A DNA stretch of 64,000 nt, from positions 124,001 to 188,000 of the forward strand of contig NIVC01000337.1 of the NCBI GenBank assembly GCA_002269645.1, written 5' to 3'. The stretch is from Macrostomum lignano. Taxonomy: Eukaryota. Both the position numbers and the translations under genes were made by a program. Under the pieces are notes generated by a model that had not been told where the DNA came from, searched no databases, and saw only the letters and a program-made list of their open reading frames with translations. Shown here in pieces: positions 10,243 through 32,935 of the stretch (position 1 is its first letter; the number at the start of each line of letters is the position of its first letter).

Positions 10243-13200
10243 ATGCTTTCTGACCAGAGCGAAGCCAAAGTGAACCCCAAGGCAGATACAACAGCGCGAT
10301 CCTATCCGATGGGCCTGTCCGGGAAGCAACAACAACAGCAGCAACAGAAGCAGCAGCAACAGAAACCGCCGTCATCGACTTCTTCGTCGGCAATGTCGAC
10401 GGCTTCGTCGGCCGCGGCGGCCAGCCTGGGCACCGTGTACTTTGTTGAGCCAACTGGCGGCAGTCGGCACGGCTTGCTGCGCAAGGCCTTCAGCCTGCTG
10501 GATGGGGAGCCCAGCTGCTCGGCCGTCTGGCTGCCGGAGGCTCAGGTGCCATCGGTGCTGGCCAAGCATCAGCAGCGGTCTGGCGGCTCCGGCCGGGCCT
10601 ACTTCGTATTCGATGACTTCCAGGGCGCCGCCTACGAGAGAGCGGCGGCCGCGCCTGGCTGCCGGCTGTTCGGCGCCCAGCTGCTGCTGCAGTACCTGCG
10701 CGATGACTTGCCGCTGCCCAAGTGGGAGGTGCCGCTGTTCTCCGCCGCGCTCAAGGATTTGCAGGCAAGTTTTGGGGGGTGCGGCGAGCTCCATGTGAGG
10801 CTCTGATGATCTGCAGTTCGCGGCTCTGTATCTGGAGATTCTGTATCCGATAGGAGTGCGTGAAATGGTATTTAAGATAGTTCTGCAGTTGCTAGAGGCC
10901 CATACAGGCATTTTGCTCCGCAACGGGGAGGGGCAGAGGTATAAGCTGAATAACTCCCAACTCCAATTGGTTAACTCCATTTCCATTAACCCCACTCCTC
11001 AACCGGCTGCTCCCCACTCCTCAACCTGCAACTCCCCACCCCTCAATCCAAAACTCCCCACCCCCTCATTCCGCAACTCCCCACCTCTCAATCCAAAACT
11101 CCCCACCCACTCATCCCGCAACTCCCCACCCCTCAATCCACAACTCCCCACCCCCTCATCCCGCAACTCCCCACCTCTCAATCCAAAACTCCCCACCCCC
11201 TCATCCCGCAACTCCCCACCCCTCAATCCACAACTCCCCACCCCCTCATCCCGCAACTCCCCACCCCTCAATCCACAACTCCCCACCCCCTCATCCCGCA
11301 ACTCCCCACCCCTCAATCCACAACTCCCCACCCCCTCATCCCGCAACTCCCCACCTCTCAATCCACAACTCCCCACCCCCTCATCCCGCAACTCCCCACC
11401 CCTCAATCCACAACTCCCCACCCCCTCAACCCGCAACTCCCCACCTCTCAATCCACAACTCCCCACCCCCTCATCCCGCAACTCCCCACCCCTCAATCCA
11501 CAACTCCCCACCCCCTCAACCCGCAACTCCCCACCTCTCAATCCACAACTCCCCACCCCTCAACCCGCAACTCCCCACCCCCTCATCCCGCAACTCCCCA
11601 CCCCTCAACCTACAACTCCCCACCCCTCAACCCACAACTCCCCACCCCTCAACCCACAATTCCCCGCCCCTCAACCCGCTGCTCCCCATCCCTCAACCCG
11701 CTGCTCCCCACCCTCAACCTGCTGCTCCCCACCCCTCAACCCGCTGCTCCCCACCCCTCAACCCGCTGCTCCCCACCCCTCAACCCGCTGCACCCCACTC
11801 CTCAACCCGCTGCTCCCCACTCCTCAACCCGCAACTCCCCACCCCTCAACTCGCGCAGATCTCCGTGTCGGGCATCGAGGACCGCGCCACCGTTAAGCGC
11901 AAGATCCGCATGCTGCACGGCAACTTCCAACCCGATTTAACTGACGATGTCAACGTGCTCATTACTACCTGCACCAATTCAAAGAAGTACCTGGTTGCTA
12001 AGCAGTTCAACATTAAAGTGCTGCTGCCCGAATGGCTGGACGGCCTCCTGGCCTGGTCCCGCAGTCGCAGTGTCGTTGAGCCGTTCGGCCTGCCCGACTT
12101 CGCCCGCTACGTGGTGCCGCCATTTCACAATGTGACCGCCACCACTACCAACTTTGAGCAGACCGAGAAGGACCTCATTCAACGGCTGGTGGTGAAAAAC
12201 GGCGGCCGCTACACCGGCAACCTGGTGGTTGGCGAGTGCACCCACCTCATCGTGGCCCGGCCAGTCGGTCAGAAGTACAACTACGCTCGGAATTGGAAAA
12301 TCAACTGCGTCAGCCTGCAGTGGGTGGTGGACAGCGATCGCAAGCAGTGCTGCTTGGACATTGCCGACTATCTGGTGTCGGACGATGGCAAGAACCACGC
12401 CGGCGCCAAGCCCGCCAACAGCTCCACGCCGGACAAGCAGCGGGTGCCGCTCAGCGGGAAGACCGCGCCCGATGTCAGCTGCCTGCTGGACCCGGACCGG
12501 TCCCGGGTCAACGAGACTGTGGCCAGCGTGCCCGGCGACCGCAGCGTCTGCTACCCGGTGTCCTCAACTGCCGCTTCAACAGCGTCCGCGCCGACTCCGC
12601 AGCCGCCTGTTTCGGCGGCATCCAGCGGCATCGACAAAGAGAACAACTTCCGGATTCCAAATCCGCCGCAGCCTCAGCCGCTGGCTCCACTTCGCGACCT
12701 GCGCCTGTTGATCGCCTGCTGCCGCGGTCAGCAAGCGGAGCTGCAGCGCCTGACATCCATGGCTCGCCAGCTTGGCGCCTCGCCAATCTCCGCCAGTTCG
12801 AATCAACGCGTTGTCGAAGCGGACGCTGGCCTGATCATCGAGCCGGATCAGCTGGAGGATTTACCGGCTGGGGTTCAGTGCGGCGTGCTGGTTGCCAAGC
12901 AGTGGCTGCTTGACTGCTCCGAGAAGCAGCAGCGCCTGCCGTTTGACGCCTACAAACTGCTTTGGCGGCAGCCGGCAGCGGCAGATGAGGCGCATGAAAC
13001 TGGGGACAGCACCATGGGCCCCGGCGATGCTGCGCCTGCTGCTGCCGCCGCTCCACCGGCGTCCGACATGCTGGAGGAAAGCCTCAACATCCTGTGCGAC
13101 TATGTCAGAGAAGAGGAGTCCCAGCTCAAGCAGCAGGAGCAGCAGGCTGCTGAGCAGGACGATGAAGAAGGAGATGAAACTGAACTGCCGCCGGTTCGCT

Positions 13201-16200
13201 CTGTGGTGGACAACAATTCCACAGCTGCCAATGTGCTGCCAGAGACCGAGGAGCCCGCTAACAGCTCCACGGCCGCCGACACGCAGAGCTTCCTGACTGG
13301 CCGTCGCGTCGGCATCCTCGGTCTGGAGCCGGCCGCCGCCGCGGTCGCCGCCCGCAGTGTTACCCGCCTTGGCGGCCAGGTCGCCTCCGCGGCCGCTGCC
13401 GAAGCTACTCAGCTGGACTTGGCCGTGCTGCCAGTTGTCTATCAGCGAGGCAGCGGCGGGGCCACCGAGGCCGGCCTGCTGTCAGCCGACGAGCTGGTGA
13501 CCGACGCCTGGCTTGCCGACTGCATTGACGGCCCGGCCGTGATGGTGGCGGACCCAGACTCGGAGCCTTGGTACCGGCCCTGCGTGCTGTCCGCCACAGC
13601 CTCCAAGCCGCTGGCCGGCGTGGTGCTCTGCGTCAGCGGCTTCGAGCTGCGCGATCGGGAGCGCGTGACCACCCTGGGCCGCGGCCTCGGCGCCATCGTC
13701 CAGGACAACCTCAGCCGCGTCAGCAAGCCCGACCGCCAGCTCCGGGTCACCACTCACCTGGTGCTGGCGGCCAGCGGGGGCCACAAATACTCGGCCGCAA
13801 TGGGCTGGGGCAGCGTGCACTGCGTCACCAAGCACTGGCTGGGCGAGTGCGGCCGTCAGGGCCGCCGCCTGCCTGAGGCTGAGTTCCACATCGACTCGCT
13901 GGCCGACTACGAGGAGCGAAAGCGGCGCGAAGCTGCCGCCGCCGCCGCTTCGGCCATGTCGGCGACAATGTCCTCGGCTGCGGATACCCCAACGGCTACG
14001 GCTGTTGCCATGGTGACGTCGACGATGGCGTCCGACTGCGTTGTTCCGGCCAGTCAGGCGTCCCCGATGCAGCAGCAGCAGCGGCAGCCGGCGAATCCGC
14101 ACCGGGCGGCCATGGACAGCCCGAGCGTGTTTCTCAACAGCGGCTATCGGCCGCGCTTTGACCTGCAGGCGCTGAGCGCCGCCCTGCGCAGCCCGGTGCC
14201 GGGGCCGCCGGCCGGCACGCCGGACTCGGTTCAGTACGCCCGCGCCAGGCGCAACATCCGCCAGACCTGCCGGGCGCAGGGCAAACGCGAGCTGCTCGTC
14301 CTGCTGCCGCCGCCGTCCTCAGCGGCTGCCATCGGCGGCTCAGCCAACTCCGCGGTCGCGACGGCCGCCGACGCTAACGGCGACTTTGCCACGCCGCAGA
14401 CCCCGCAGCAGGCGGCCGGCTTGCTATCGGGCGTCACCGTCTACCTGTCCGCCCGCCTCGGCGCCCAGCGGTCCCGCCTGGCCCAGCTGGCCGAGTCTCT
14501 CGGCGCCAGGTCGCGCTGGCAGTGGGACCCGCGCACCTGCACCCACCTGGTTGCCGAGGGGCCGCCGTCTGATGATCCCGAGCTGCAGCGGGCGATGCAG
14601 CCGCAGCCGGCCGCCACTGCCTCGGCGCCTCCGCCCCGACTGGTCAGCCCGGCCTGGCTGCTGCAGTGCAAGCGGCTGCGACGCCGGCTTGACGAGCGCG
14701 ACTATCCGCCTACGTCCGCCTCATCTGCCGCTGCCGCCCAGCCTCACGGGCAGCATCATCATCACAAGCACCATCACCATCATGCGCATCAGGCTCAGCA
14801 GCTGGAGAGGCGAGCCTCCCGCGCCAGCCTGCAGGAGCTGAGCAGCAAGCTCGACTGCTTTGGCAAAGGCGCCGACAACTCCCCCGACGGCGTATCCGGC
14901 GACGTAGCCGGAGCCAACGTCAACGACATCGGCGGCGCATCCGCTGGCACCGGCGGCGGCAGTGGTACCGCGCCGGACAGCCGGCTGGCCCAGAATCGAG
15001 CCCGCCAGCTGCTCGAATCCGAGCCGGACGAGTCCGCCGTCTGCGTCGGTGGCGGCAGCGGCAGCGGCTCCGACGTCCGAGCAGCCGGCAAGGCCGCCAC
15101 TGTCGCTTCCTCCGTTGCCGCCAACGCCGCTGCCGCCGCTACGGCCGCCGTGCGACCCAACGAGCCGCTGCTGGTGGGCTGGCGCTACACCGACTCGGAC
15201 GGAGCCGCGGCGGCGCCGCAACCGCCGCCTCCTCAGCAGTCCACGCCGCCCGAGCCGCCGCGCCTCTTCCAGATCACCGGCTTCAGCGCTCAGGTAAAGT
15301 TTTGCATTCCTTTTTGATAGGTCACATCTTGAGGATATAAATGCCTTTATTTCTAGGAATCGAGTTGAGATTTGTTTTAATTAGAGTGACAAAATAGCGC
15401 GAACTGTTTGTTGTATTGTCTCAGTAAGAAAAGCGCTGTTATTATTATTTAAAAGGACATGATGTACGCATGAGCGGGGTGCACGATTGGCTCAACGCAA
15501 TTGACATAACGTGCGTTATTATTGTTTGTAGCATTATTAGTGATTATTCTAACCCAGGGGTCAGCCAACCCCAGCCAGGGGGTCATATGTGACCCGCAAA
15601 GCCTCTCTATCCGGCCCTCAGGTCTTTCGAAACTTTACAATAGCAATCCGGCCTGCTTAAGGTTTTTTTCTTCTCAGCTCTCTTCTCTCTCCTCTTCTCT
15701 TCTCTCTCCTCTTCTCTTCTCTCTCCTCTTCTCTTCTCCCATTTCTTCTCTCTTTTCTATTGTCTCTCCTCTCTGGCCCTTGAGGTTACGGAGAAAAGTT
15801 TTCCGAACCCCGTATTAATTAACCAACAACACACCAGTAAGGCCTCAAGCATAAATGCCGCTCCGGCAGGACCGGGACCGCCTTGTCAGCCAGATCCGCG
15901 GCCTGGGCGGCTCGCTGGTCTCAGTGGAGTCCGAGGACCCCAGCCACCTGGTCTGCGGCCGCCTGCTGCGCAACGAGAAACTCCTCCGCTGCGTTGCCGC
16001 CGGCCGCTGGGTCCTCCGGCCTGCCTATGTTGAAGCCTCGGCCAAGGCCGGCCGCTGGCTGCCCGAGGAGCCGTACGAGTGGGGCGGCGGCGGCGGCGGC
16101 GCTGAATCTGCGGACGCCGAGACCCGCCTTCTGGCCGCCGCCTGCAGCCGGTGGCGCCAGCGTGGCGGGCGAGCCTTTCGCGACTGGCGCGCCGCCCTGC

Positions 16201-16610
16201 TGTGCCCGCCGGACAAGCTGGCCAGCTTCCGGCGCCTCCTGGAGGCCGGCGGTGGCCGAGTTGTGGCCGACGGGCCGCCCTATCCGGCCGCCGCCAGCGT
16301 CAGTCACGCCTTCTGCCAGCGCGGCAACTACGCCGGCTGCTCGGACACCCTGTCCGGCGCCGGCTCCCACCTGTCCTGGCTGAGAATCGACTTCATCGCC
16401 GCCCACCTGGTGGACGAGAAGCCGCCAGAGCCGGCCGCTTACCGGCTGCCGCAGGCGCGCAAGCGACAGCAGGTCGGCGGGCCGGCGGGCAGCAGCGGCG
16501 CAGCGGACGAGGACGACTTCAGCGACGCGACTTCGACCGCCTCCAGCGGCCGAGGCGGCGGCAGCGGCGGCGCGGCCACCAGATCTTCAAAGCGGATTCG
16601 GCGCCGCTAA
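10243..16610 (+). CDS. TOPBP1: DNA topoisomerase II-binding protein 1 (multi-BRCT); exons 10243-10764, 11859-15293, 15870-16610; ~1565 aa
   Basis: BRCT1/2 (SKKYLVAK...LLPEWL; [24 protein letters not shown]...CTHLIV...KYNYARNW), BRCT4/5 ([12 protein letters not shown]), BRCT6 ([10 protein letters not shown]...CTHLV), and terminal tandem BRCT (FQITGFSAQ|[14 protein letters not shown]; [24 protein letters not shown]). Both introns are phase 0. The start could instead be the ATG at 10309. Confidence 0.93.
10985..11850. repeat. C-rich ~33-bp minisatellite in TOPBP1 intron 1
   Basis: CCCCACCCCCTCATCCCGCAACTCCCCACCCCTCAATCCACAACT-like units. Confidence 0.93.
15555..15812. mobile_element. Degenerate hAT/Charlie-like MITE in TOPBP1 intron 2
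   Basis: Begins CAGGGGTCAGCCAAC and ends AAAAGTTTTCCGAACCCCG, resembling hAT-Charlie termini. TIR match is imperfect and no TSD is visible. Confidence 0.45.
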
Positions 16611-17425: not shown

Positions 17426-17522
17426 GGTATACTAATATTAGGCTAGTAGTGTATCACCTCTGACAGCTTGTAGTATCTAATTAAATATATGAAATGGATT
17501 TCAGTCGGTCCGTCACAGTGGG

Positions 17523-20500
17523 ATGCTGACCCGCCTCTGGCCAGCTGGCGGGGCCGGCAGCAGCGGCGCAGCTGGAGGCGGCAGCGGCTTCACAAGAGCT
17601 GCCAGGATTGTGCTGGCCCCGCCAGACTTCCAGGTGAGCGAATGAAGGGTTGATTTGTCCTTTGCATTACTGAAGAGCTTTCACTCATCCAGCTGTCACT
17701 CATCAAGCTGTCACTCATCTAGCTGTCACTCATCCAGCTGTCACTCATCTAGCTGTCACTCATCCAGCTGTCACTCATCTAGCTGTCACTCATCTAGCTG
17801 TCATCACTTATCTAGCTGTCATCACTCATCTAGCTTTCACTCATCTAGCTGTCACTCATCTAGCTGTCACTCATCTAGCTGTCACTCATCTAGCTGTCAC
17901 TCATCTAGCTGTCACTCATCTAGCTCTCATCACTCATCTAGCTGTCGCTCATCTCTAGTTGTCACTCATCCAGCTGTCACTCTTCTAGCTGTCACTAATC
18001 TAGCTGTCCCTCATCCAGCTGTCATCCCAGCTACTCTCCCACCCCATCACCCCCAGGTGAATCCCAGCTTGCTAATCGACTCCTATCTGGAGTGGCCGGT
18101 TCGCCTGCTGGGCTCCCTGTCCGGTGTCCGCAGCAACCGGGACATCAGCAACCGGGCCTACCTGCTCAGCTTGGTGGACTCAATCGAGCGCGGCATTCGT
18201 GGCAGTCGCTCCCCGCCTGTAGACGCCATGCTCAGCCTGAGCGTCTCCGGCCTCCGTCTGGAGCGCCGCGTCCAGCCGCAGCAGCAGCAGCAGCCACCGC
18301 AGCAGATGCCCGAGGTGCTGCTCCGAGTTCCCGTGTCCCAGCTGCTCTCTGTGGCCTACGTCAGGGACTCCGACAGGCACCTGCTCGCGCTGCACTACAG
18401 CCCGGATGCCAACGGAACCAGCCAGCTCTGCGCCATGTCCGTCCACGCCAGGATCCACGCTCAGGTGAGCAGTTGTGAGACACCGGTGATGGATTGTTGA
18501 TGTGAGACACCGGTGATGGATTGCTGATGTGAGACACCGGTGATGGATTGCTGATGTGAGATACCGGTGATGGATTGCTGATGTGAGACACCGGTGATCG
18601 ATTTTTGATGTGAGACACCGGTGATGGATTGCTAATGTTAGAAACGGGTGATTCATTGCTGATGTGAGACACGAGTGATTGATTTCTGATGTGAGACACG
18701 GGTGATTGATTGCTGATGTGAGATACCGGTGATGGATTGCTAATGTGAGACACCGGTGATGGATTGCTGATGTGAAATACCTGTTGTACATAATGAGACA
18801 CCTGTTGTACATAATGGCACATCTGTTGTACATAATGACACACCTGTTGTACATAATGACACACCTGTTGTACATAATGAAACACCTGTTGTACATAATG
18901 AGACACCTTTGTACATAATGAAACACCTGTTGTACATAATGAGACACCTGTTGCGGATACTCAGTCTCAGCTCAGTGATTCTACAACATTTGATCTTCCC
19001 CAACCCCTTCATCCTCTCAGGAGATCTGCGCGGTGGCCCGCCAGCTGCTGCAGCTCGCCTACACGGAGGCCACTTTGGAATTCTTCGACCGCGCCCTCGG
19101 TGGCGCTGCTTCAACATCCGGCGGCGCCCCTTCGACATCCGGCGCCTCCGTGCTCGGCGGCGGCGGCCACAGCGGCAGCGGGGGTGGCAGCGGAGACAGC
19201 GGCAGGGCCGGCGGCGGCGGAGCCCGCACGGCAACGGACTCGAACGCCACCCCGGTGACCTCGACAGCCAGCAGCCCCGTGATTGGCCGGCGCGACAACC
19301 CGCAGGAGGCGGTGAGCAGCCTCGCCGGCAGCCTAGCGTCCAGCCTGAGCCGCCAGGAGCTGGTCACGTTCGGGCAGCTGTTCCGTGCCTGGTCCTCCGG
19401 CGCCTCCTCTTTCGCTGGCAGCGTCCGGCCTCAGCTGGAGCGGCTGTTCCCGGCTGAGCGGAGCCACCTGCTGCTGGGCCTGCGGCCCTTCATCCCGGCC
19501 AGGGATCACCAGGCTTTCGATGAGTTTCTGCATGACCGCGGCCTTAGACCGACCGGTTACAGTCGCTCGGTGAGCATCGGGAGCACCGCCAGCAGCGTGC
19601 GAAGTCGGGACTCCAGCGAGGTCGATCTGGACCAGGCTCTCGGCTCCATCGTTGCTCAGGTGAGCCATCGGGGATGAGGATTTTGGGACTGAAATCTCTA
19701 AGTTCCCTGGCGGTTAAGAATATATCCGGTAGTACCAATCCCGACTCTAGAAGTCCCGATCCCGACTCTAGAAGTCCCGATCCCAAATCTAGAAGTCCCG
19801 TTCCCAACTCTAGAAGGGCCGATCCCGACTAGTAGTCCCGATCCCGACTCTAGTAGTCCCGATCCCGACTCCAGAAGTCCCGATCCCGACTCCAGAAGTC
19901 CCGATCCCAACTCTAGAAGTCCCGTTCCCGACTCTAGAAGTCCCGATCCCGACTCTAGAAGTCCCGATCCCGACTCTAGAAGTCCCGATCCCAACTCTAG
20001 AAGTCCCGATCCCGACTCTAGAAGTCCCGATAGAAGTCCCGATCCCGACTCTAGAAATCATGATCCCGACTCTAGAAGTCCCGATCCCAACTCTAGAAGT
20101 CCCGTTCCCAACTCTAGAAGTCCCGTTCCCAACTCTAGAAGGGCCGATCCCGACTAGTAGTCCCGATCCCGACTCTAGAAGTCCCGATAGAAGTCCCGAT
20201 CCCGACTCTAGAAATCATGATCCCGACTCTAGAAGTCCCGATCCCAACTCTAGAAGTCCCGTTCCCAACTCTAGAAGGGCCGATCCCGACTAGTAGTCCC
20301 GATCCCGACTCTAGAAGTCCCGATCCCACCTCTGAGATTCTTTAAATCATGATCCTGAATGTAAAAATCCCGAGTCGGAATTTCGAGAAGAATTGACCTT
20401 CATTTGTCCTTAACAAACCTTTCCTCTCCCCAGGTGCAGCGGCTGGACATGAGCCAGCAGCAGTTTGCCCAGCCCAGCTACTCTCGCTCCGTGTCCGCCG

Positions 20501-20655
20501 TCTCCGCCTCAACTGCCGGCCGGTCGCCCGGCCAGCCGCACAAGTACCTCGCGCTGGACGGACTCGAAGATTCCGCCTCCATGGTGGCGCCGGCGGACTC
20601 CGGGCGAAGTCCCGTCAAGGAGCTCTCGCCGATGGGTCACGCGCACAGATTCTAA
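17523..20655 (+). CDS. CCM2: Cerebral cavernous malformations 2 (malcavernin) homolog, PTB + harmonin-homology domain; exons 17523-17633, 18057-18464, 19021-19659, 20434-20655; 459 aa
   Basis: PTB: LEWPVRLLGSL, DAMLSLS, LRVPVSQLLSVAYVRD, YTEATLEFFDRAL. HHD: LSRQELVTF...HLLLGLRPFIPARDHQAFDEFL. Three phase-0 GT-AG introns join in frame. Confidence 0.92.
17680..18035. repeat. 15-bp minisatellite (TCACTCATCTAGCTG)n in CCM2 intron 1
   Basis: Direct reading. Confidence 0.95.
18470..18955. repeat. Two adjacent minisatellites (27-bp GATGTGAGACACCGGTGATGGATTGCT; 21-bp CACCTGTTGTACATAATGAGA) in CCM2 intron 2
   Basis: Periods counted from the sequence. Confidence 0.93.
19735..20330. repeat. 21-bp minisatellite (CCCGATCCCGACTCTAGAAGT)n in CCM2 intron 3
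   Basis: Direct reading. Confidence 0.95.
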
Positions 20656-20659
20656 CTGG

Positions 20660-21427: not shown

Positions 21428-21433
21428 AATAAA
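21428..21433 (+). terminator. Candidate polyadenylation signal AATAAA for CCM2
   Basis: First AATAAA seen downstream of the stop; AT-rich context makes it weak. Confidence 0.3.
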
Positions 21434-22099: not shown

Positions 22100-23785
22100 C
22101 AAGCATCCCACTCCGTTATGGGATTCTAATCCCACTCTGTTATGGGATCCTAATCCCACTGTTATGGGATCCTAACCCCACTCTGTTATGGGGATCCTAA
22201 CCCCACTCTGTTATGGGATCCTAATCCCACCCTGTTATGGGATCCTAACCCCACTCTGTTATGGGATCCTAACCCCACTCTGTTATGGAATCCTAATCCC
22301 ACTCTGTTATGGGGATCCTAATCCCACTCTGTTATGGGATCCTAACCCCACTCTGTTATGGGATCCTAATCCCACCCTGTTATGGGATCCTAATCCCACC
22401 CTGTTATGGGATCCTAACCCCACTCTGTTATGGAATCCTAATCCCACTCTGTTATGGGGATCCTAATCCCACCCTGTTATGGGATCCTAACCCCACTCTG
22501 TTATGGGATCCTAACCCCACTCTGTTATGGAATCCTAATCCCACTCTGTTATGGGGATCCTAATCCCACTCTGTTATGGGATCCTAACCCCACTCTGTTA
22601 TGGGATCCTAATCCCATTCTGTTATGGGATCCTAATCCCACCCTGTTATGGGATCCTAATCCCACTCTGTTATGGGATCCTAATCCCACTCTGTTACATG
22701 AATCCTAATCCCACTCTGTTATGGGGATCCTAATCCCACTCTGTTATGGGATCCTAACCCCACTCTGTTATGGGATCCTAATCCCACCCTGTTATGGGAT
22801 CCTAATCCCACTCTGTTACATGAATCCTAATCCCACTCTGTTATGGGGATCCTAATCCCACTCTGTTATGGGGATCCCAATCCCACTCTGTTATGGGGAT
22901 CCTAATCCCACCCTGTTATGGGGATCCTAATCCCACCCTGTTATGGGGATCCTAATCCCACCCTGTTATGGGGATCCTAATCCCACTCTGTTATGGGGAT
23001 CCTAATCCCACCCTGTTATGGGGATCCTAATCCCACTCTGTTATGGGGATCCTAATCCCACTCTGTTATGGGGATCCTAATCCCACTCTTTTATGGGGAT
23101 TCTAATCCCACTCTGTTATAAGATCCTAATCCCACTCTGTTATGGGGATCCTAATCCCACTCTGTTATGGGGATTCTAATCCCACTCTGTTATGGGGATC
23201 CTAATCCCACCCTGTTATGGGGATCCTAATCCCACTCTTTTATGGGGATTCTAATCCCACTCTTTTATGGGGATCCTAATCCCACTCTGTTATGGGATCC
23301 TAACCCCACTCTGTTATGGGGATCCTAATCCCACTCTGTTATGGGGATCCTAACCCCACTCTGTTACATGAATCCTAATCCCACTCTGTTATATGAATCC
23401 TAATCCCACTCTGTTATGGGGATCCTAATCCCACTCTGTTATGGGGATCCTAATCCCACTCTTTTATGGGGATTCTAATCCCACTCTTTTATGGGGATTC
23501 TAATCCCACTCTGTTATGGGGATTCTAATCCCACTCTGTTATATGAATCCTAATCCCACTCTGTTATGGGGATCCTAATCCCACCCTGTTATGGGGATCC
23601 TAATCCCACTCTTTTATGGGGATTCTAATCCTACTCTTTTATGGGGATCCTAATCCCACTCTGTTATGGGGATCCTAATCCCACTCTTTTATGGGGATTC
23701 TAATCCCACTCTTTCATGGGGATCCTAATCCCACTCTGTTATGGGGATCTTAATCCCGCTATGTTATGGGATCTTAATCCCAGTA
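22100..23785. repeat. 24-25-bp minisatellite (GGGATCCTAATCCCACTCTGTTAT)n
   Basis: Direct reading; each unit contains a GGGAT..ATCCC mini-hairpin. Confidence 0.96.
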
Positions 23786-23947
23786 TTGCAGGTAAAAGTC
23801 CCATCATTATATGAAAGTTATCTTACAACTTGCGGCGTTGTCGATATGCATATTTATGCATCCAACGCACTGCTCTCCATATTGATGCCGCTTTGAGCGC
23901 CTGATACGAAATTCAACAAGCTGGACTCCGAAAACCAACGTCGTCAG

Positions 23948-25600
23948 GAGGCGGTCGACAGCCTGGTCTGCAGCCTGAGCCGCCAGGAGATGGAGCAGTT
24001 TGGCCAGCTGCTCAGCAACTGGGAATCCGGCGCCGCCTTTGCTGGCAGCGTGCGGCCTCAGCTGGAGCGGCTGTTTCCGGCTGAGCGGAGCCACCTGCTG
24101 CTGCGCCTGCGGCCGCTCGTGCCCGACAGAGACCGCCGGGCCTTCGAAGATTTCCTTCGTAATTGGGTAAGCATTTGCGCTCGTCTCGTGCTGCAGTTTC
24201 TGCACCACCGCCAGTCTCCCAGATCCTCAGTTGCTGGGCCAGCCTCCCAGATCCTCAGTTGCTGGGCCCGCCTCCCAGATCCTCAGTTGCTTTGCCAGCC
24301 TCCCAGATCCTCAGTTGCTGGGCCAGCCTCCCAGATCCTCAGTTGCTGAGCCAGCCTCCCAGAGCCTCAGTTGCTGAGCCAGCCTCCCAGATCCTCAGTT
24401 GCTGGGCCAGCCTCCCAGATCCTCAGTTGCTGGGCCAGCCTCCCAGATCCTCAGTTGCTTTGCCAGCCTCCCAGATCCTCAGTTGCTTTGCCAGCCTCCC
24501 AGATCCTCAGTTGCTGGGCCAGCCTCCCAGATCCTCAGTTGCTGGGCCAGCCTCCCAGATCCTCAGTTGCTTTGCCAGCCTCCCAGATCCTCAGTTGCTG
24601 GGCCACAGCCTCCCAGATCCTCAGTTGCTTTGCCAGCCTCCCAGATCCTCAGTTGCTGGGCCAGCCTCCCAGATCCTCAGTTGCTTTGCCAGCCTCCCAG
24701 ATCCTCAGTTGCTGGGCCAGCCTCCCAGATCCTCAGTTGCTGTGCCAGCCTCCCAGATCCTCAGTTGCTGGGCCACAGCCTCCCAGATCCTCAGTTGCTT
24801 TGCCAGCCTCCCAGATCCTCAGTTGCTGGGCCACAGCCTCCCAGATCCTCAGTTGCTTTGCCAGCCTCCCAGATCCTCAGTTGCTGGGCCACAGCCTCCC
24901 AGATCCTCAGTTGCTGGGCCAGTCTCCCAGATCCTCAGTTGCTGGGTCAGCCTCCCAGATCCTCAGTTGCTGGGCCAGCCTCCCAGATCCTCAGTTGCTG
25001 GGCCAGCCTCCCAGATCCTCAGTTGCTGGGCCAGCCTCCCAGATCCTCAGTTGCTGGGCCAGCCTCCCAGATCCTCAGTTGCTTTGCCAGCCTCCCAGAT
25101 CCTCAGTTGCTGGGCCAGCCTCCCAGATCCTCAGTTGCTGGGCCAGTCTCCCAGATCCTCAGTTGCTGAGCCACAGCCTCCCAGATCCTCAGTTGCTGAG
25201 CCAGTCTCCCAGATCCTCAGTTGCTGGGCCAGTCTCCCAGATCCTCAGTTGCTGGGCCAGCCTCCCAGATCCTCAGTTGCTGGGCCACAGCCTCCCAGAT
25301 CCTCAGTTGCTGGGCCAGCCTCCCAGATCCTCAGTTGCTGGGCCACAGCCTCCCAGATCCTCAGTTGCTGGGCCAGCCTCCCTGATCCTCAGTTGCTGGG
25401 CCACAGCCTCCCAGATCCTCAGTTGCTGGGCCAGCCTCCCAGATCCTCAGTTGCTGGGCCAGCCTCCCAGATCCTCAGGCCTGGGGATGCTGATTGGTAT
25501 TTGATCCTTGCCTTCCATCGCGCAGGCTCGGCCAGACCCGGACACTGGCCGCAGTCCGGTCGACGAACTCGCCCCAGTGGGTCACATGCACAGGCTCTGA
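23948..25600 (+). CDS. Partial CCM2 duplicate: harmonin-homology-domain exon (~23948-24166) plus terminal exon (25526-25600); short paralog, alternative 3' cassette or pseudogene
   Basis: EAVDSLVCSLSRQEMEQFGQLLSNWESGAAFAGSVRPQLERLFPAERSHLLLRLRPLVPDRDRRAFEDFLRNW|ARPDPDTGRSPVDELAPVGHMHRL* parallels the CCM2 HHD and its tail (DSGRSPVKELSPMGHAHRF*). Donor GTAAGC at 24167 and acceptor CAG at 25523-25525 are phase 0. The 5' end is unresolved (in-frame TGA at 23894; Met at 23990). Confidence 0.75.
24210..25478. repeat. 28-bp minisatellite (CCAGCCTCCCAGATCCTCAGTTGCTGGG)n in the intron of the CCM2 duplicate
   Basis: Direct reading. Confidence 0.96.
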
Positions 25601-26082
25601 CCACTGCTCGCACCCGCGTCTGTGCTACTTCCGGCCCAGGACTGACTGCTGTTCATAAGCGCCACATCCCTCTGTCTACTTCCAGTGTGCTGTCAGAAAA
25701 ATCATATCAGAGTTTTCTATTTGTGATTGTAGATTATATTTTTGGTTTAACATTTATTTTTCTACTTTCAGTAATATCTCCTGTAAGTTCAATAGTATTT
25801 GCGTTTCCTGCACGGAAATTGCTGCATTCCATTGGCCGGTTGGCTCAGCTGTTGCTATTTTTGTTTTAATTTTCCACTGGCCATGACTACAAATCGAAAT
25901 ATGCTGCTTTTAAAGCTTTTTATAAAGATGTTGGTAAATACAAAGAGGAATATTTTTTTATAAAATTATGTACTCATTTTTTCATAGATTTTCTGACACA
26001 ACATTTCAAGTTGTTTATTTTCGTCTCTTTAGCCTTAAGACATTATTTCACGGATAAATCATTTACGAGCGTATCTTAAATA

Positions 26083-26591
26083 CCACATTTTAACAATTTC
26101 TTGGACATAAGTGAAGTTTATTTAGTCTTTGGCCAGCTCAGTCCTAAAAGAGTGAGTTTGATTATGTCAGCACTCGGGCTTTACCATAGACTATAGTAAA
26201 GAAGTGAAATCGATTTAGTCAAGTGCCACATTTAAACCCTTCCATGACTTGATTTTAGTCTAAGTGAATTTCATTTAGTCATCATAGCGGCAGCTGCAGA
26301 CATATGCAGAGCCACTATCTCTGAGCAGGACCGACGAAGACTCATCGACGCCTTTGTTGGCAATGCCGATTGGCAGCAACTAGCGAGACAGCTAAACATC
26401 CCACGCCAGTCTGCCAGAAATGTTATCGTTAAATACGAGCAAAGTGGACGCGTTCAGGCCTCGAGCCAACATTTCTTTACTATAGTCTATGGTAAAGCCC
26501 GAGTGCTGCCTAAATCAAACTCACCTTTTTAGGACTGAGCTGGCCAAAGACTAAATAAACTTCACTTATGTCCAAAAAATGTTAAAATGTG
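26083..26591 (+). mobile_element. Internally deleted Tc1/mariner-like DNA transposon with ~120-bp TIRs
   Basis: 26083-26203 and 26473-26591 are near-identical inverted repeats flanked by TA (26081-82, 26592-93). Interior encodes RATISEQDRRRLIDAFVGNADWQQLARQLNIPRQSARNVIVKYEQSG, an N-terminal transposase HTH-like fragment with no in-frame ATG. Confidence 0.85.
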
Positions 26592-26634
26592 TATTACAAT
26601 TGGGGCGAACATATAAGGTACATGTATTTGGGTT

Positions 26635-29600
26635 TGTGAGATGTCTGGGATCGTGGGATATGTGGGATTGTGGGATATCTGGGATTGTGGGATATTGTAG
26701 GATATCTGGGATTGTGGGATATTGTAGGATATCTGGGATTGTGGCATATCTGGGATTGTGGGATATTGTAGGATATTTGGGATTGTGGGATATTGTAGGA
26801 TATCTGGGATTGTGGGATATTGTAGGATATCTGGGATTGTGGGATATTGTAGGATATCTGGGATTGTGGCATATCTGGGATTGTGGGATATTGTAGGATA
26901 TTTGGGATTGTGGGATATTGTAGGATATCTGGGATTGTGGGATATCTGGGATTGTGGGATATTGTAGGATATCTGGGATTGTGGGATATTGTAGGATATC
27001 TGGGATTGTGGCATATCTGGGATTGTGGGATATTGTAGGATATTTGGGATTGTGGGATATTGTAGGATATCTGGGATTGTGGGATATTGTAGGATATCTG
27101 GGATTGTGGCATATCTGGGATTGTGGGATATTGTAGGATATTTGGGATTGTGGGATATTGTAGGATATCTGGGATTGTGGGATATTGTAGGATATCTGGG
27201 ATTGTGGGATATTGTAGGATATCTGGGATTGTGGGATATTGTAGGATATCTGGGATTGTGGGATATCTGGGATTGTGGGATATTGTAGGATATTTGGGAT
27301 TGTGGGATATTGTAGGATATCTGGGATTGTGGCATATCTGGGATTGTGGGATATTGTAGGATATTTGGGATTGTGGGATATTGTAGGATATCTGGGATTG
27401 TGGGATATTGTAGAATATCTGGGATTGTGGCATATCTGGGATTGTGGGATATTGTAGGATATCTGGGATTGTGGGAAATCTGGGATTGTGGGATATTGTA
27501 GGATATCTGGGATTGTGGCATATCTGGGATTGTGGGATATTGTAGGATATCTGGGATTGTGGCATATCTGGGATTGTGGGATATTGTAGGATATCTGGGA
27601 TTGTGGCATATCTGGGATTGTGGGATATTGTAGGATATCTGGGATTGTGGGATATTGTGGGATATCTGGGATTGTGGCATATCTGGGATTGTGGGATATT
27701 GTAGGATTTTTGGGATTGTGGGATATTGTAGGATATCTGGGATTGTGGCATATTGTAGGATATCTGGGATTGTGGCATATCTGGGATTGTGGGATATTGT
27801 AGGATATTTACGATTGTGGGATATTGTAGGATATCTGGGATTGTGGGATATTGTAGGATATCTGGGATTATGGGATATTGTAGGATATCTGGGATTGTGG
27901 CATATCTGGGATTGTGGGATATTGTAGGATATCTGGGATTGTGGCATATCTGAGATTGTGGGATATTGTAGGATATCTGGGATTGTGGCATATCTGGGAT
28001 TGTGGGATATTGTAGGAAATCTGGGATTGTGGGATATTGTGGGATATCTGGGATTTTGGCATATCTGGGATTGTGGGATATTGTAGGATATCTGGGATTG
28101 TGGGATATTGTAGGATTTCTGGGATTGTGGGATATTGTAGGATATCTGGGATTGTGGCATATTGTAGGATATCTGGGATTGTGGCATATCTGGGATTGTA
28201 GGATATTGTAGGATATATTTACGATTGTGGGATATTGTAGGATATCTGGGATTGTGGGATATTGTAGGATATCTGGGATTGTGGGATATTGTAGGATATC
28301 TGGGATTGTGGCATATCTGGGATTGTGGGATATTGTAGGATATCTGGGATTGTGGCATATCTGGGATTGTGGGATATTGTAGGATATCTGGGATTGTGGG
28401 ATATCTGGGATTGTGGGAAATTGTAGGATATCTGGGATTGTGGGATATTGTAGGATATCTGGGATTGTGGGATATCTGGGATTGTGGGATATTGTAGGAT
28501 ATTTGGGATTGTGGGATATTGTAGGATATCTGGGATTGTGGGATATTGTAGGATATCTGGGATTGTGGGATATCTGGGATTGTGGGATATTGTAGGATAT
28601 CTGGGATTGTGGGATATTGTAGGATATCTGGGATTGTGGCATATCTGGGATTGTGGGATATTGTAGGATATTTGGGATTGTGGGATATCTGGGATTGTGG
28701 GATATTGTAGGATATCTGGGATTGTGGCATATCTGGGATTGTGGGATATTGTAGGATATCTGGGATTGTGGCATATCTGGGATTGTGGGATATTGTAGGA
28801 TATCTGGGATTGTGGGATATTGTGGGATATCTGGGATTGTGGGATATTGTAGGATATCTGGGATTGTGGGATATTGTAGGATATCTGGGATTGTGGGATA
28901 TTGTAGGATATCTGGAATTGTGGGATATTGTAGGATATCTGGGATTGTGGGATATTGTAGGATATCTGGGATTGTGGCATATCTGGGATTGTGGATATTG
29001 TAGGATATTTGGGATTGTGGGATATTGTAGGATATCTGGGATTGTGGCATATCTGGGATTGTGGGATATTGTAGGATATCTGGGATTGTGGGATATTGTA
29101 GGATATCTGGGATTGTGGCATATCTGGGATTGTGGGATATTGTAGGATATTTGGGATTGTGGGATATTGTAGGATATCTGGGATTGTGGCATATCTGGGA
29201 TTGTGGGATATTGTAGGATATTTGGGATTGTGGGATATTGTAGGATATCTGGGATTGTGGGATATTGTAGAATATCTGGGATTGTGGCATATCTGGGATT
29301 GTGGGATATTGTAGGATATCTGGGATTGTGGGATATTGTAGGATATCTGGGATTGTGGCATATCTGGGATTGTGGGATATTGTAGGATATTTGGGATTGT
29401 GGGATATTGTAGGATATCTGGGATTGTGGCATATCTGGGATTGTGGGATATTGTAGGATATCTGGGATTGTGGCATATCTGGGATTGTGGGATATTGTAG
29501 GATATCTGGGATTGTGGCATATCTGGGATTGTGGGATATTGTAGGATATCTGGGATTGTGGCATATCTGGGATTGTGGGATATTGTAGGATATCTGGGAT

Positions 29601-32600
29601 TGTGGGATATTGTGGGATATCTGGGATTGTGGCATATCTGGGATTGTGGGATATTGTAGGATTTCTGGGATTGTGGGATATTGTAGGATATCTGGGATTG
29701 TGGCATATTGTAGGATATCTGGGATTGTGGCATATCTGGGATTGTGGGATATTGTAGGATATTTACGATTGTGGGATATTGTAGGATATCTGGGATTGTG
29801 GGATATTGTAGGATATCTGGGATTGTGGGATATTGTAGGATATCTGGGATTGTGGCATATCTGGGATTGTGGGATATTGTAGGATATCTGGGATTGTGGC
29901 ATATCTGAGATTGTGGGATATTGTAGGATATCTGGGATTGTGGCATATCTGGGATTGTGGGATATTGTAGGAAATCTGGGATTGTGGGATATTGTGGGAT
30001 ATCTGGGATTTTGGCATATCTGGGATTGTGGGATATTGTAGGATATCTGGGATTGTGGGATATTGTAGGATATCTGGGATTGTGGGATATTGTAGGATAT
30101 CTGGGATTGTGGCATATTGTAGGATATCTGGGATTGTGGCATATCTGGGATTGTAGGATATTGTAGGATATATTTACGATTGTGGGATATTGTAGGATAT
30201 CTGGGATTGTGGGATATTGTAGGATATCTGGGATTGTGGGATATTGTAGGATATCTGGGATTGTGGCATATCTGGGATTGTGGGATATTGTAGGATATCT
30301 GGGATTGTGGCATATCTGGGATTGTGGGATATTGTAGGATATCTGGGATTGTGGGATATCTGGGATTGTGGGAAATTGTAGGATATCTGGGATTGTGGTA
30401 TATTGTAGGATATCTGGGATTGTGGGATATCTGGGATTGTGGGATATTGTAGGATATTTGGGATTGTGGGATATTGTAGGATATCTGGGATTGTGGGATA
30501 TTGTAGGATATCTGGGATTGTGGGATATCTGGGATTGTGGGATATTGTAGGATATCTGGGATTGTGGGATATTGTAGGATATCTGGGATTGTGGCATATC
30601 TGGGATTGTGGGATATTGTAGGATATTTGGGATTGTGGGATATCTGGGATTGTGGGATATTGTAGGATATCTGGGATTGTGGCATATCTGGGATTGTGGG
30701 ATATTGTAGGATATCTGGGATTGTGGCATATCTGGGATTGTGGGATATTGTAGGATATCTGGGATTGTGGGATATTGTGGGATATCTGGGATTGTGGGAT
30801 ATTGTAGGATATCTGGGATTGTGGGATATTGTAGGATATCTGGGATTGTGGGATATTGTAGGATATCTGGGATTGTGGGATATTGTAGGATATCTGGGAT
30901 TGTGGGATATTGTAGGATATCTGGGATTGTGGCATATCTGGGATTGTGGGATATTGTAGGATATTTGGGATTGTGGGATATTGTAGGATATCTGGGATTG
31001 TGGCATATCTGGGATTGTGGGATATTGTAGGATATTTGGGATTGTGGGATATTGTAGGATATCTGGGATTGTGGGATATTGTAGAATATCTGGGATTGTG
31101 GCATATCTGGGATTGTGGGATATTGTAGGATATCTGGGATTGTGGGAAATCTGGGATTGTGGGATATTGTAGGATATCTGGGATTGTGGCATATCTGGGA
31201 TTGTGGGATATTGTAGGATATCTGGGATTGTGGCATATCTGGGATTGTGGGATATTGTAGGATATCTGGGATTGTGGCATATCTGGGATTGTGGGATATT
31301 GTAGGATATCTGGGATTGTGGGATATTGTGGGATATCTGGGATTGTGGCATATCTGGGATTGTGGGATATTGTAGGATTTCTGGGATTGTGGGATATTGT
31401 AGGATATCTGGGATTGTGGCATATTGTAGGATATCTGGGATTGTGGCATATCTGGGATTGTGGGATATTGTAGGATATTTACGATTGTGGGATATTGTAG
31501 GATATCTGGGATTGTGGGATATTGTAGGATATCTGGGATTGTGGGATATTGTAGGATATCTGGGATTGTGGCATATCTGGGATTGTGGGATATTGTAGGA
31601 TATCTGGGATTGTGGCATATCTGAGATTGTGGGATATTGTAGGATATCTGGGATTGTGGCATATCTGGGATTGTGGGATATTGTAGGAAATCTGGGATTG
31701 TGGGATATTGTGGGATATCTGGGATTTTGGCATATCTGGGATTGTGGGATATTGTAGGATATCTGGGATTGTGGGATATTGTAGGATATCTGGGATTGTG
31801 GGATATTGTAGGATATCTGGGATTGTGGCATATTGTAGGATATCTGGGATTGTGGCATATCTGGGATTGTAGGATATTGTAGGATATATTTACGATTGTG
31901 GGATATTGTAGGATATCTGGGATTGTGGGATATTGTAGGATATCTGGGATTGTGGGATATTGTAGGATATCTGGGATTGTGGCATATCTGGGATTGTGGG
32001 ATATTGTAGGATATCTGGGATTGTGGCATATCTGGGATTGTGGGATATTGTAGGATATCTGGGATTGTGGGATATCTGGGATTGTGGGATATTGTAGGAT
32101 ATCTGGGATTGTGGGATATTGTAGGATATCTGGGATTGTGGGATATCTGGGATTGTGGGATATTGTAGGATATTTGGGATTGTGGGATATTGTAGGATAT
32201 CTGGGATTGTGGGATATTGTAGGATATCTGGGATTGTGGGATATCTGGGATTGTGGGATATTGTAGGATATCTGGGATTGTGGGATATTGTAGGATATCT
32301 GGGATTGTGGCATATCTGGGATTGTGGGATATTGTAGGATATTTGGGATTGTGGGATATTGTAGGATATCTGGGATTGTGGAATATTGTAGAATATCTGG
32401 GATTGTGGCATATTTGGGATTGTGGGATATTGTAGGATATCTGGGATTGTGGGATATTGTAGGATATCTGGGATTGTGGGATATTGTAGGATATCTGGGA
32501 TTGTGGGATATTGTAGGATATCTGGGATTGTGGGATATTGTAGGATATCTGGGATTGTGGGATATTGTAGGATATCTGGGATTGTGGGATATTGTAGGAT

Positions 32601-32935
32601 ATCTGGGATTGTGGCATATCTGGGATTGTGGCATATTGTAGGATATCTGGGATTGTGGCATATCTGGGCTTGTGGGATATCTGGGCTTGTGGGATATCTG
32701 GGATTGTGGGATATCTGGGATTGTTGGATATTGTGGGATATCTGGGCTTGTGGGATATCTGGGATTGTGGGATATTGTGGGATATCTGGGATTGTGGGAT
32801 ATTGCATGGAATATCTGGGCTTGTGGGATATCTGGGATTGTTGGATATTGTGGGATATCTGAGATTATGGAATATTGTGGGAGATATCTTGAATTGAGGC
32901 ATATCTGGGATAATCAGAATTCGGGATATCTAGGA
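26635..32935. repeat. 6.3-kb satellite of 27-bp (GGGATATTGTAGGATATCTGGGATTGT) and 17-bp (GGCATATCTGGGATTGT) units with higher-order repeats
   Basis: Direct reading; rare variants recur at 1955- and 1716-bp spacing. Confidence 0.98.

Follow-up and report, generated by a model that had tools for sequence, protein, structure and literature searches.

The window analysed here, a 64-kb stretch of Macrostomum lignano contig NIVC01000337.1, carries a CCM2 gene with four exons at 17523-20655 on the forward strand (CDS exons 17523-17633, 18057-18464, 19021-19659 and 20434-20655). All CCM2 introns are GT-AG and in phase 0, and the 459-aa product, the malcavernin orthologue, is identical to GenBank PAA85278.1 (BOX15_Mlig011054g1). 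This product matched the malcavernin PTB domain (PDB 4wj7, E = 1.3e-12), the malcavernin harmonin-homology domain (HHD; PDB 4ykc, E = 5.9e-9) and the Pfam profile CCM2_C (E = 3e-10). The 5′ end of the CCM2 transcript is annotated at 17505, immediately 3′ of a TTTCAG. An AATAAA at 21428-21433 (+) is the only one in the CCM2 3′ region and is therefore the probable CCM2 poly(A) signal. A 25-bp satellite in 68 copies (22105-23782) occupies most of the spacer downstream of the gene. Searching the whole 64-kb window with the full CCM2 protein (tblastn) failed to identify a second PTB domain.

A partial duplicate of CCM2 lies 3.3 kb downstream of the gene and covers its HHD-coding part and its last ~20 residues in an intact two-exon reading frame. 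Exon 1 of the copy, defined by ORF analysis, Pfam, tblastn and structure prediction, is an open frame of 90 codons (23897-24166, +) predicted to encode a five-helix HHD; the HHD-coding part spans 23945-24166, with parent homology beginning at ~23945. An in-frame TGA at 23894-23896 (+), kept in all three assembled loci described below, closes this frame upstream. The copy intron (24167-25525, +) is in phase 0, with donor TGG/GTAAGC (GT at 24167-24168) and acceptor GCGCAG/G (AG at 25524-25525), and consists almost entirely of a 28-bp satellite (45 copies, 24210-25478). Exon 2 (25526-25600, +) encodes ARPDPDTGRSPVDELAPVGHMHRL followed by TGA; the final 19 residues correspond by homology to the C-terminus of CCM2. 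When spliced, 23990-24166 and 25526-25600 form an ORF of 83 aa ending in this TGA.

The homology between copy and parent was verified at several levels. At the nucleotide level, blastn gave 79.4% identity over 204 nt (23956-24156 versus 19326-19529) and, for the tail, 73% identity over 63 nt (25539-25601 versus 20594-20656). The corresponding tblastn matches had 66.7% amino acid identity over 78 HHD residues (E = 1.4e-17) and 68% over 19 tail residues (E = 5e-4), a similarity that, by these sequence scores, is far above chance. Alignment to the copy placed the source segments in CCM2 at 19303-19529 (+) for the HHD-coding block and 20594-20655 (+) for the C-terminal peptide with its stop. Consistently, the copy matched Pfam PF16545 CCM2_C with 40.9 bits (E = 2.3e-10, profile positions 11-85 of 100), above the curated gathering cutoff of 27.3 bits, and the human malcavernin HHD with 39 bits (E = 7.9e-9), a score equal to that of the parent. 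The PTB, the domain that binds NPxY/F motifs of KRIT1, is absent from the copy, as tblastn of full CCM2 matched the HHD and tail segments only. An earlier note, made from the letters alone, had described a frame-preserving, spliced-looking duplicate limited to the HHD and tail, with its own phase-0 GT-AG intron, exclusively in-frame indels and a change of LLLGLRPFIP to LLLRLRPLVP; the searches, the ORF and the alignment bore out all of this. Its description of the differences as synonymous did not hold, since we counted ~26.5 synonymous versus 31.5 nonsynonymous ones. The supposed 12-nt deletion in the copy is actually a tandem duplication specific to parent CCM2 (19318-19341), because the copy has the same length there as human CCM2.

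Between its two homology blocks the copy has 1.36 kb of DNA at the place taken in the parent by the 3′ end of exon 3, all of intron 3 and the 5′ part of exon 4, and it lacks the sequence coding for the parental linker (~95 residues). No poly(A) tract was found after the copy stop. These three features led us to reject a processed retrocopy. Intronisation of a parental exon (GGTGAGCAT versus GGTAAGCAT) was also dropped: when the ends of the copy intron were aligned locally to the parental exon-3 tail and exon 4, the alignments did not exceed shuffled controls except for one 17-mer. The partial tandem duplication was at the DNA level and took in the 3′ portion of CCM2, starting in mid-exon 3 and running through the stop. 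The copy was then, as we see it, remodelled into a compact coding unit of two exons: the first keeps the whole HHD, the satellite-filled GT-AG intron stands in for the stretch from late exon 3 to early exon 4, with loss of the ~95-residue linker, and the second retains just the final ~20 residues with the stop.

To compare alleles, we used three assembled loci: the window locus, L002 (NIVC01001238.1) and L003 (NIVC01000916.1). Each of them preserves the copy ORF with its stop, the GTAAGC donor and the CAG acceptor, and internal stops, frameshifts and splice-site losses in the copy were not found at these M. lignano loci; L002 has a copy intron of 895 bp and L003 one of 1146 bp. Coding differences among the loci amount to three synonymous and one nonsynonymous, and the L002 allele carries an R to L change at R354, a residue invariant from human to flatworm. 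The loci diverge by 1-2% alike in exons, introns and spacers, so that their agreement has little power; we therefore rejected the comparison as a general selection test and used the local flank contrast alone. Flank and exon columns varied at 6/59 versus 3/308 (P = 8e-4), and in a second contrast at 14/200 versus 1/131 (P = 6e-3).

The flanking gene order, thiolase, TopBP1-like, CCM2, copy and Patched-like, is the same on the three scaffolds, and several contigs of an independent older assembly (ML2) show the same arrangement. It is highly improbable that a mis-assembled or chimeric repeat region, or its annotation, mimics a duplication here: although the region is embedded in satellites and redundancy of the assembly has been documented (PMC5730564), the arrangement with its flanking genes recurs across scaffolds and assemblies, and the copy is ~20% diverged from its parent and is therefore not a collapsed or duplicated read. 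The copy is thus real.

Next to its parent, the copy has a dN/dS of 0.32 (bootstrap range 0.16-0.60), which never reached 1 or more in 10,000 bootstraps. This comparison of the two HHDs had been proposed in the earlier note, and the result lies away from 1, with disabling mutations absent from the three loci; the marks of a pseudogene were thus lacking. A neutral copy beside a constrained parent predicts at least 0.5, and since the bootstrap P for such values is 0.08, the observed ratio is still compatible with that situation. For the tail alone, omega was 0.15 (Fisher P = 0.004) at a dS of 1.3, close to saturation of synonymous sites. Conservation of the tail protein despite this requires that exon 2 was long read in frame and hence joined in phase to exon 1. 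The copy-parent dS of ~0.55, compared with 1-2% between loci, indicates that the frame has outlived the recent polyploidisation by far. In a relative-rate comparison with human as outgroup, the ancestral residue was kept by the copy at 3 sites and by the parent at 4, and the ancestral loop length is retained in the copy and altered in the parent. Retention by the copy of ancestral states that the parent lost is unexpected if the copy alone were decaying (P = 0.02-0.10), a range in which the selection tests on the copy are marginal.

Partial duplicates are usually pseudogenes, and it is possible, if rather doubtful, that the copy is a non-functional relic, a partial duplicate without 5′ exons, promoter or start that is slowly decaying and possibly present in read-through or non-coding RNA. 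In that case the open frame, the splice-like GT-AG and the low dN/dS would be owed to constraint on the parent, to limited time, to possible gene-conversion patches and to chance. The compatibility of dN/dS with 0.5 fits this explanation, and in ORF-survival simulations an open frame of 83-97 codons is expected in 20-27% of cases under neutrality, so that its survival is non-significant. Over a block of 66 nt, FAGSVRPQLERLFPAERSHLLL, copy and parent differ at just 3 positions; this block could be a gene-conversion tract. Decay is opposed by the relative rates, by which the copy is not accelerated, by the exclusively in-frame indels, by the conserved tail, by the age of the frame and by the new donor and acceptor, which are strong and exactly in phase. 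We infer that the copy is probably still coding and under relaxed purifying selection.

The 5′ end of such a coding unit was considered in light of the trans-splicing system of the animal. Spliced leader (SL) trans-splicing of polycistronic precursors is common in M. lignano, and its spliced leader is 35 nt long and ends in AUG. Operon genes trans-spliced in this way have a YTNCAG acceptor, lie on the same strand and are spaced by a repeat-adjusted distance of <1 kb (PMC8629364). The copy is on the same strand as CCM2 at ~2.4 kb, which after removal of 1.68 kb of satellite leaves ~0.73 kb between the AATAAA of CCM2 and a candidate (trans-)splice acceptor at 23853-23858 (+). This site reads TTTCAG, a YTNCAG, in L002 and L003 and TTTATG in the window, and it also starts a stretch that is 100% identical across the three loci. 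Consistent with its use, the 5′-partial UniProt model P0005 begins at the first full codon 3′ of the TTTCAG acceptor. The acceptor of CCM2 is intact in the window and lost in L002 and L003, whereas that of the copy is lost in the window and intact in L002 and L003. Loss of the acceptor in the window allele would also suit a relic, as would the lack of any AATAAA within 950 nt of the copy stop.

The start codon can be placed in several ways. The earlier note had reported a 16-codon uORF at 23846-23896, and this ORF and its terminal TGA are present; its ATG, however, precedes the TTTCAG acceptor of the sister loci and is therefore probably outside the mature mRNA there. The first ATG of the copy frame, at 23990, is preceded by a 3-codon in-frame uORF, with the TGA at 23894 closing the frame; translation might also begin at a CUG at 23921, whose Kozak context is good. 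A relic would account for the absence of an in-frame ATG before helix H2 and for the in-frame TGA just upstream. The CAG at 23945-23947 is the homologue of a parental mid-exon Gln codon and follows an A-rich, pyrimidine-poor tract; nothing marks it as an acceptor. An N-terminal peptide such as EAVDSLVCSLSR would separate initiation at Met 23990 from initiation at an SL-AUG or a CUG.

Structure prediction with AF2 modelled the exon-1 frame (23897-24166) as five helices (residues 4-26, 29-44, 48-59, 66-70 and 77-89) with a pLDDT of 85.8 and a pTM of 0.67. The best Foldseek matches of this model were all CCM2 HHD crystals, among them 4ykd (TM 0.78/0.83, rmsd 1.3 Å), and superposition on CCM2 HHD crystal structures gave TM ~0.8 and rmsd 1.3-1.6 Å. 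As modelled, the exon-1 frame encodes a complete five-helix HHD, a confident prediction that argues against a relic. Met 23990 aligns to human I315 and corresponds to model residue 32, inside helix H2, so the 83-aa product would be without H1. The earlier note had offered structure prediction as a check on an 83-aa HHD-only decoy starting at this Met; it is the exon-1 frame that folds as an HHD, whereas the proposed decoy, whose ORF exists and matches annotation, lacks H1 and is an incomplete HHD unless its translation or splicing begins further 5′. Its model was poor, with a pLDDT of 65.9, a value that is uncontrolled against that of the exon-1 frame (single sequence versus two-sequence alignment).

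In human CCM2 HHD, H1 (L299, M303) joins H2 and H4 to form the groove for the MEKK3 helix and makes up half of it. Where human CCM2 has the contact residues L299, M303, A319, A320 and L322, the residues are R, V, G, Q and L in the copy and P, V, G, Q and F in the parent; L322 alone is kept, and by the copy only. The parent diverges as much as the copy at these positions, so the human contacts may not transfer to M. lignano. The copy also carries G352R, F356L and I357V in the most conserved HHD motif (H4-H5); these substitutions, together with R354L in L002, speak for a relic. The flatworm C-terminal tail is proline-rich, is modelled as disordered and had no PDB match. We rejected its identity with the TLNRD1-binding helix, since the human helix (413-438) is hydrophobic.

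The 83-aa product from Met 23990 is exactly UniProt A0A1I8IDC5, an automated prediction, and the model put forward earlier therefore agrees with the annotation and had been predicted before. The junction 24166>25526 is shared by seven independent automated models of ML2. GenBank lacks the copy in its core annotation at all three loci, as might be expected of a relic; this missing call is uninformative, because the annotation dropped transcripts that were called non-coding by TransDecoder or overlapped repeats (PMC5730564). A search of 5.8 billion proteins and a phmmer search with P0001 of 1.84 billion representatives gave no matches outside M. lignano gene models. No mention of CCM2 in M. lignano or of the Mlig gene ids was found in papers or supplements.

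Two ML2 models, A0A1I8G9P7 and A0A1I8F1R8, fuse the copy to CCM2 and thus contain a tandem HHD, an arrangement that the earlier note had also envisaged. The copy exons might accordingly be distal terminal exons of CCM2, cis-spliced from 19659 or from an exon-4 donor, although we consider this unlikely. CCM2 introns are in phase 0 and the frame 23897-24166 is open, and therefore a junction 19659>23948 would keep the frame; a fusion would moreover supply a start codon, keep H1, which is conserved in frame, and explain why no ATG precedes H1. However, A0A1I8G9P7 joins ...KELSPM/APDTKF... from a donor ATGG/GTCACG at ~20634 to an AG at 23896-23897, while A0A1I8F1R8 uses a different acceptor, and such disagreement around a weak GTCAC donor is typical of ab initio gene merging. 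The fusion models do exist, yet their donor lies inside exon 4, not at 19659, and the proposed acceptor CAG is the unmarked Gln codon, with a pyrimidine-poor tract before it, described above. At all three loci the transcript-based models in GenBank stop CCM2 at 20655, and in five further ML2 models the copy stands as a gene of its own. Across UniProt, a published survey counted exactly one HHD in each CCM2 protein (PMC8048344).

We tentatively prefer to interpret the copy as a lineage-specific, PTB-less HHD mini-gene of M. lignano, an interpretation to which, judging from sequence, we give somewhat less than an even chance. For a coding unit we count the Pfam and human HHD scores, the predicted fold, dN/dS, the in-frame indels, the relative rate, the three intact loci, the flank divergence, the seven gene models and the ~0.73-kb spacing; against it we count the ATG inside H2, the TGA at 23894, the TTTATG allele, R354L, the absence of AATAAA and the poor conservation of MEKK3-contact residues, even in the parent. 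The most likely product would be a free-standing HHD protein without the PTB and also without the downstream linker of the parent. By analogy, a free HHD could engage HHD ligands such as the amphipathic N-terminal helix of a MEKK3-type kinase, and it would not be tethered to KRIT1. We infer that the copy most likely has its own mRNA downstream of CCM2, which could arise by SL trans-splicing of a polycistronic precursor.

A bolder proposal, which we regard as improbable, makes the copy the trans-spliced downstream gene of a CCM2 operon. Were the SL joined at CAG 23945-23947, its AUG would be in frame and would restore almost all of helix H1, giving a complete free HHD of ~98 aa without the KRIT1-binding PTB and the downstream parental linker. 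Co-transcribed with full-length CCM2, such a protein would be a built-in competitor (microProtein), coupled in stoichiometry to CCM2, for the MEKK3-type ligand that CCM2 binds. The opposite losses of acceptors at the homeologous loci would then be early signs of subfunctionalisation following polyploidy.

CCM2L, a vertebrate CCM2 paralogue, has been proposed to modulate CCM signalling by competition. It is full-length (PTB and HHD) and stems from an old vertebrate duplication, whereas the copy is a partial, flatworm-specific tandem duplicate. Id, LITTLE ZIPPER and other microProteins are small single-interaction-domain, dominant-negative competitors derived from larger paralogues; the copy resembles them, as far as its sequence tells, in having 83-114 aa, an interaction domain only and an adjacent multi-domain parent. 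With the CCM2 HHD itself (Pfam PF16545; PDB 4FQN, 4YKD, 4Y5O) it shares the profile match, the predicted five-helix fold, the LLLxLRPxxP motif and H2 residue L322; it differs in the substituted H4-H5 motif, in its first ATG within H2 and in a coding unit without PTB, linker or the hydrophobic helix downstream of the HHD. Strand and spacing relative to CCM2 are like those of downstream genes in M. lignano SL operons (PMC8629364), whereas the YTNCAG acceptor is present in 2/3 loci and the window allele is unlike them. Human CCM2-1209 is an HHD-only C-terminal isoform made from alternative promoters (PMC6825194). Like the product proposed for the copy, it derives from CCM2 and is essentially an HHD lacking the KRIT1-binding PTB. 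The human isoform is made from the CCM2 gene itself through alternative transcription starts, whereas the flatworm product would stem from a separate, diverged duplicate that has a new intron of its own. Given this isoform, the way to tune CCM-MEKK3 signalling that the earlier note had called unusual would not be without precedent.

Either way, UniProt already lists the predicted protein, and the finding applies to a single lineage. If the copy is a relic, it would add to the numerous partial duplicates of a neopolyploid, repeat-rich genome and would counsel caution on automated models. If it is expressed, an HHD-only product would have arisen by partial duplication and a new intron as well as, in human, by alternative promoters. 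The locus would then be a natural experiment separating the two halves of the CCM2 adaptor, with a free HHD encoded beside, and possibly co-transcribed with, full-length CCM2 in an animal in which transgenesis and RNAi are routine, and it would offer a simple in vivo handle on the HHD uncoupled from KRIT1.

CCM2, the malcavernin orthologue (17523-20655), has four coding exons (17523-17633, 18057-18464, 19021-19659 and 20434-20655) separated by introns that are all GT-AG and phase 0. The assembled 459-aa protein is 100% identical to GenBank PAA85278.1 (BOX15_Mlig011054g1; scaffold NIVC01000337.1, assembly Mlig_3_7) and matches the PTB (4wj7, 1.3e-12) and harmonin-homology domain (HHD; 4ykc, 5.9e-9) of human malcavernin, as well as Pfam CCM2_C (3e-10). 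The GenBank model is 5'-partial, its first base (17505) lying directly 3' of a TTTCAG that conforms to the M. lignano trans-splice acceptor motif YTNCAG. The M. lignano spliced leader (SL, ending ...GCATG) joined at 17505 would yield an AUG in the CCM2 frame, six codons 5' of the native ATG at 17523. The CCM2 3' region contains one AATAAA only, at 21428. On the same strand, a TopBP1-like multi-BRCT gene (about 1560 aa, 10246-16610) ends some 0.9 kb 5' of the CCM2 acceptor, with a thiolase gene farther upstream; the downstream neighbour is a Patched/NPC1-like gene.

Downstream of CCM2 lies a partial copy in two blocks, 23956-24156 against parental 19326-19529 (79.4% identity, 204 nt) and 25539-25601 against 20594-20656 (73%, 63 nt); the encoded residues are 66.7% (78 aa, 1.4e-17) and 68% (19 aa) identical to CCM2. 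Its conceptual product passes Pfam CCM2_C (40.9 bits, gathering score 27.3). The intron (24167-25525) is GT-AG, with donor TGG/GTAAGC and acceptor GCGCAG/G, and holds 1.27 kb of 28-bp satellite; its removal would join ...AFEDFLRNW in phase 0 to ARPDPDTGRSPVDELAPVGHMHRL and a stop. These findings confirm the description in the earlier note of a CCM2 HHD-plus-tail duplicate with its own phase-0 GT-AG intron. Homology begins midway through parental exon 3 (about 19303), and the parental linker (roughly 95 residues) is missing. Because the blocks are split at the position of a parental intron and a poly(A) remnant is absent, the duplication is genomic, and a retrocopy was ruled out. Within the copy intron, a 17-mer (24195-24211, AGTTTCTGCACCACCGC) matches the parental EFLHDR coding sequence (19523-19539) at 15/17 positions, just above 300 shuffles, and may be a further remnant of the segment coding for helix H5. 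The in-frame 12-nt difference in loop length is real, but it is an insertion in the parent and not a loss from the copy: the parental H1-H2 loop (19318-19341) carries a tandem duplication (AGCCTCGCCGGC followed by AGCCTAGCGTCC, encoding SLAG and SLAS) that is missing in the copy and in human CCM2, whose length the copy shares there.

The DNA is eukaryotic and repeat-rich, tandem arrays making up 35% of the window. Between 17676 and 25478, the satellite family differs from one CCM2 intron to the next and again in the 3' UTR, the spacer beyond it and the copy intron (units of 15, 27/42, 21, 23, 25 and 28 nt). Past the copy lie a MITE-like element (26089-26587), whose 263-bp core is flanked by inverted arms of 118 nt each (26089-26206 and 26470-26587) that are 92% complementary, and a 6.2-kb G-rich satellite (26629-32882; GC skew about +0.75, units of 8, 27, 44 and 71 nt) from which a spurious minus-strand ORF of 2102 aa arises.

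The copy had been said to differ from CCM2 by synonymous changes; in fact, nonsynonymous differences (31.5) exceed synonymous ones (26.5). By the NG86 method, dN/dS between copy and parent was 0.32 (dS 0.55, dN 0.18), with a bootstrap 95% interval of 0.16-0.60 and no replicate reaching 1; it was 0.39 for the HHD and 0.15 for the tail (tail pS 0.62; Fisher P = 0.004). The main rival explanation, that the copy is a decaying relic, is a serious though lesser possibility. A neutral copy beside a constrained parent would be expected to give a dN/dS of at least 0.5, and the evidence against this is marginal (P = 0.08); that the frame has stayed open does not by itself reach significance (P = 0.2-0.27). 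When human CCM2 serves as the outgroup, the copy agrees with human against the parent at three sites (Q317, L322 and a glutamate in H5), and the parent against the copy at four (G352, F356, I357 and Q363; Tajima chi-square 0.14). Such a split is improbable if the copy alone was free to change (P = 0.02 if 9% of the changes fall to the parent, 0.10 if 17% do). In similarity to human CCM2 the copy (37% identity, 39 bits) equals the parent (38%, 37-38 bits). Each signal alone is indecisive; combined, they favour ongoing, probably relaxed, constraint on the copy.

Two sister loci, L002 (NIVC01001238.1) and L003 (NIVC01000916.1), share the gene order of the window, copy included. The three are probably homeologues or haplotypes of a neopolyploid (PMC5730564, PMC10733133), and the CCM2-to-copy duplication (dS about 0.55) far predates their split. 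In all three, the copy keeps its ORF, donor, acceptor and stop undamaged, while intron length (1359 bp in the window, 895 bp in L002, 1146 bp in L003) and satellite copy numbers vary. In L002 and L003 the G-rich satellite is far shorter, and the Patched/NPC1-like gene begins about 2.3 kb past the copy. Coding differences comprise three synonymous changes and one nonsynonymous, an R-to-L change in L002 (15738, window 24111; CGG to CTG) at the residue aligned to human R354, where R is kept in human, the parent and the other two copies. Positions 23859-23989 show no differences between the loci, against six variable columns in the 59 bp just 5' (P = 8e-4) and 14 in the 200 bp past the copy stop (P = 6e-3); this contrast is weak evidence because the loci diverge by only 1-2% overall.

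The invariant stretch directly follows a TTTCAG in L002 (15480-15485) and L003, a perfect YTNCAG equivalent to window 23853-23858, which reads TTTATG. P0005, a 5'-partial UniProt model of the copy, begins at the first full codon past this TTTCAG, with an in-frame ATG five codons upstream. This suggests that the exon begins at 23859 in the L002 and L003 alleles. Such a start would drop from the mRNA the ATG at 23846, from which an in-frame uORF had been proposed. At the CCM2 acceptor, the window has TTTCAG (17499-17504) and both L002 (9995-10000) and L003 have TTTCTG; acceptor differences are thus reciprocal between the homeologous loci. After adjustment for repeats, the copy acceptor lies about 0.73 kb from the CCM2 poly(A) signal, within the 1-kb operon criterion for M. 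lignano (Ustyantsev et al., PMC8629364). A single transcription unit may include the TopBP1-like gene, CCM2 and the copy.

As a prediction the copy protein is not new: the spliced 83-aa product of L002, R-to-L change included, is identical to UniProt A0A1I8IDC5 ('CCM2_C domain-containing protein'). Four further UniProt models, from the older and indel-rich ML2 assembly, are frameshifted forms of the same two-exon unit, and the 24166>25526 junction is present in all seven models. Two of them, A0A1I8G9P7 (497 aa) and A0A1I8F1R8, join the copy to CCM2, as would an alternative 3' cassette yielding a tandem-HHD CCM2. They do so through a weak donor within CCM2 exon 4 (ATGG/GTCACG) and two differing acceptors, and we regard the cassette as unlikely. 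At none of the three loci does the transcript-based GenBank annotation place a gene on the copy. This silence carries no information on an 83-codon ORF whose intron is satellite, because transcripts scored non-coding by TransDecoder and those overlapping repeats were deliberately left out (PMC5730564).

AlphaFold2 modelled the full exon-1 frame (23897-24166, two-sequence alignment) as five helices (pLDDT 85.8, pTM 0.67). The top PDB matches were all CCM2 HHD crystals (4ykd: TM 0.78/0.83, rmsd 1.3 Å, 35% identity), and the HHDs of RTEL1, whirlin and harmonin came next, so exon 1 is predicted to code for a complete HHD. The frame is closed upstream by a TGA (23894-23896), and the next in-frame ATG, 23990, aligns to human I315 (model residue 32), within H2. 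In the complex of the human proteins, a groove between H1/H4 and H2 takes up the N-terminal helix of MEKK3, and mutating L299 or M303 (H1) or A319, A320 or L322 (H2) breaks binding (PMC4526114; canonical HHD binding mode, PMC8048344). The 83-aa product from Met 23990, suggested as an HHD-only decoy, would lack H1 and leave this groove incomplete; its model, with a pLDDT of 65.9 and a disordered tail, is of lower confidence than that of the exon-1 frame, in an uncontrolled comparison. Unless the functional product begins 5' of 23990, it is not a canonical HHD. Such an upstream start could come from cis-splicing out of CCM2 (donors all phase 0), from SL trans-splicing at CAG 23945-23947 with the leader-end AUG (...TTGCATG) in frame, or from a CUG at 23921, whose context is A(-3)/G(+4).

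Our best, if tentative, reading of the copy is a lineage-specific PTB-less HHD mini-gene, which would have arisen by partial tandem duplication with gain of a new in-phase intron and would probably be expressed downstream of CCM2. A decoy mechanism is suggested by likeness to human CCM2-MEKK3; the human MEKK3-contact residues are poorly conserved, in the flatworm parent as well. Nor would such tuning of CCM-MEKK3 signalling be as unusual as proposed, since human CCM2 likewise makes an HHD-only isoform, but from alternative promoters (PMC6825194). The mini-gene product would bind HHD ligands without a tether to KRIT1.
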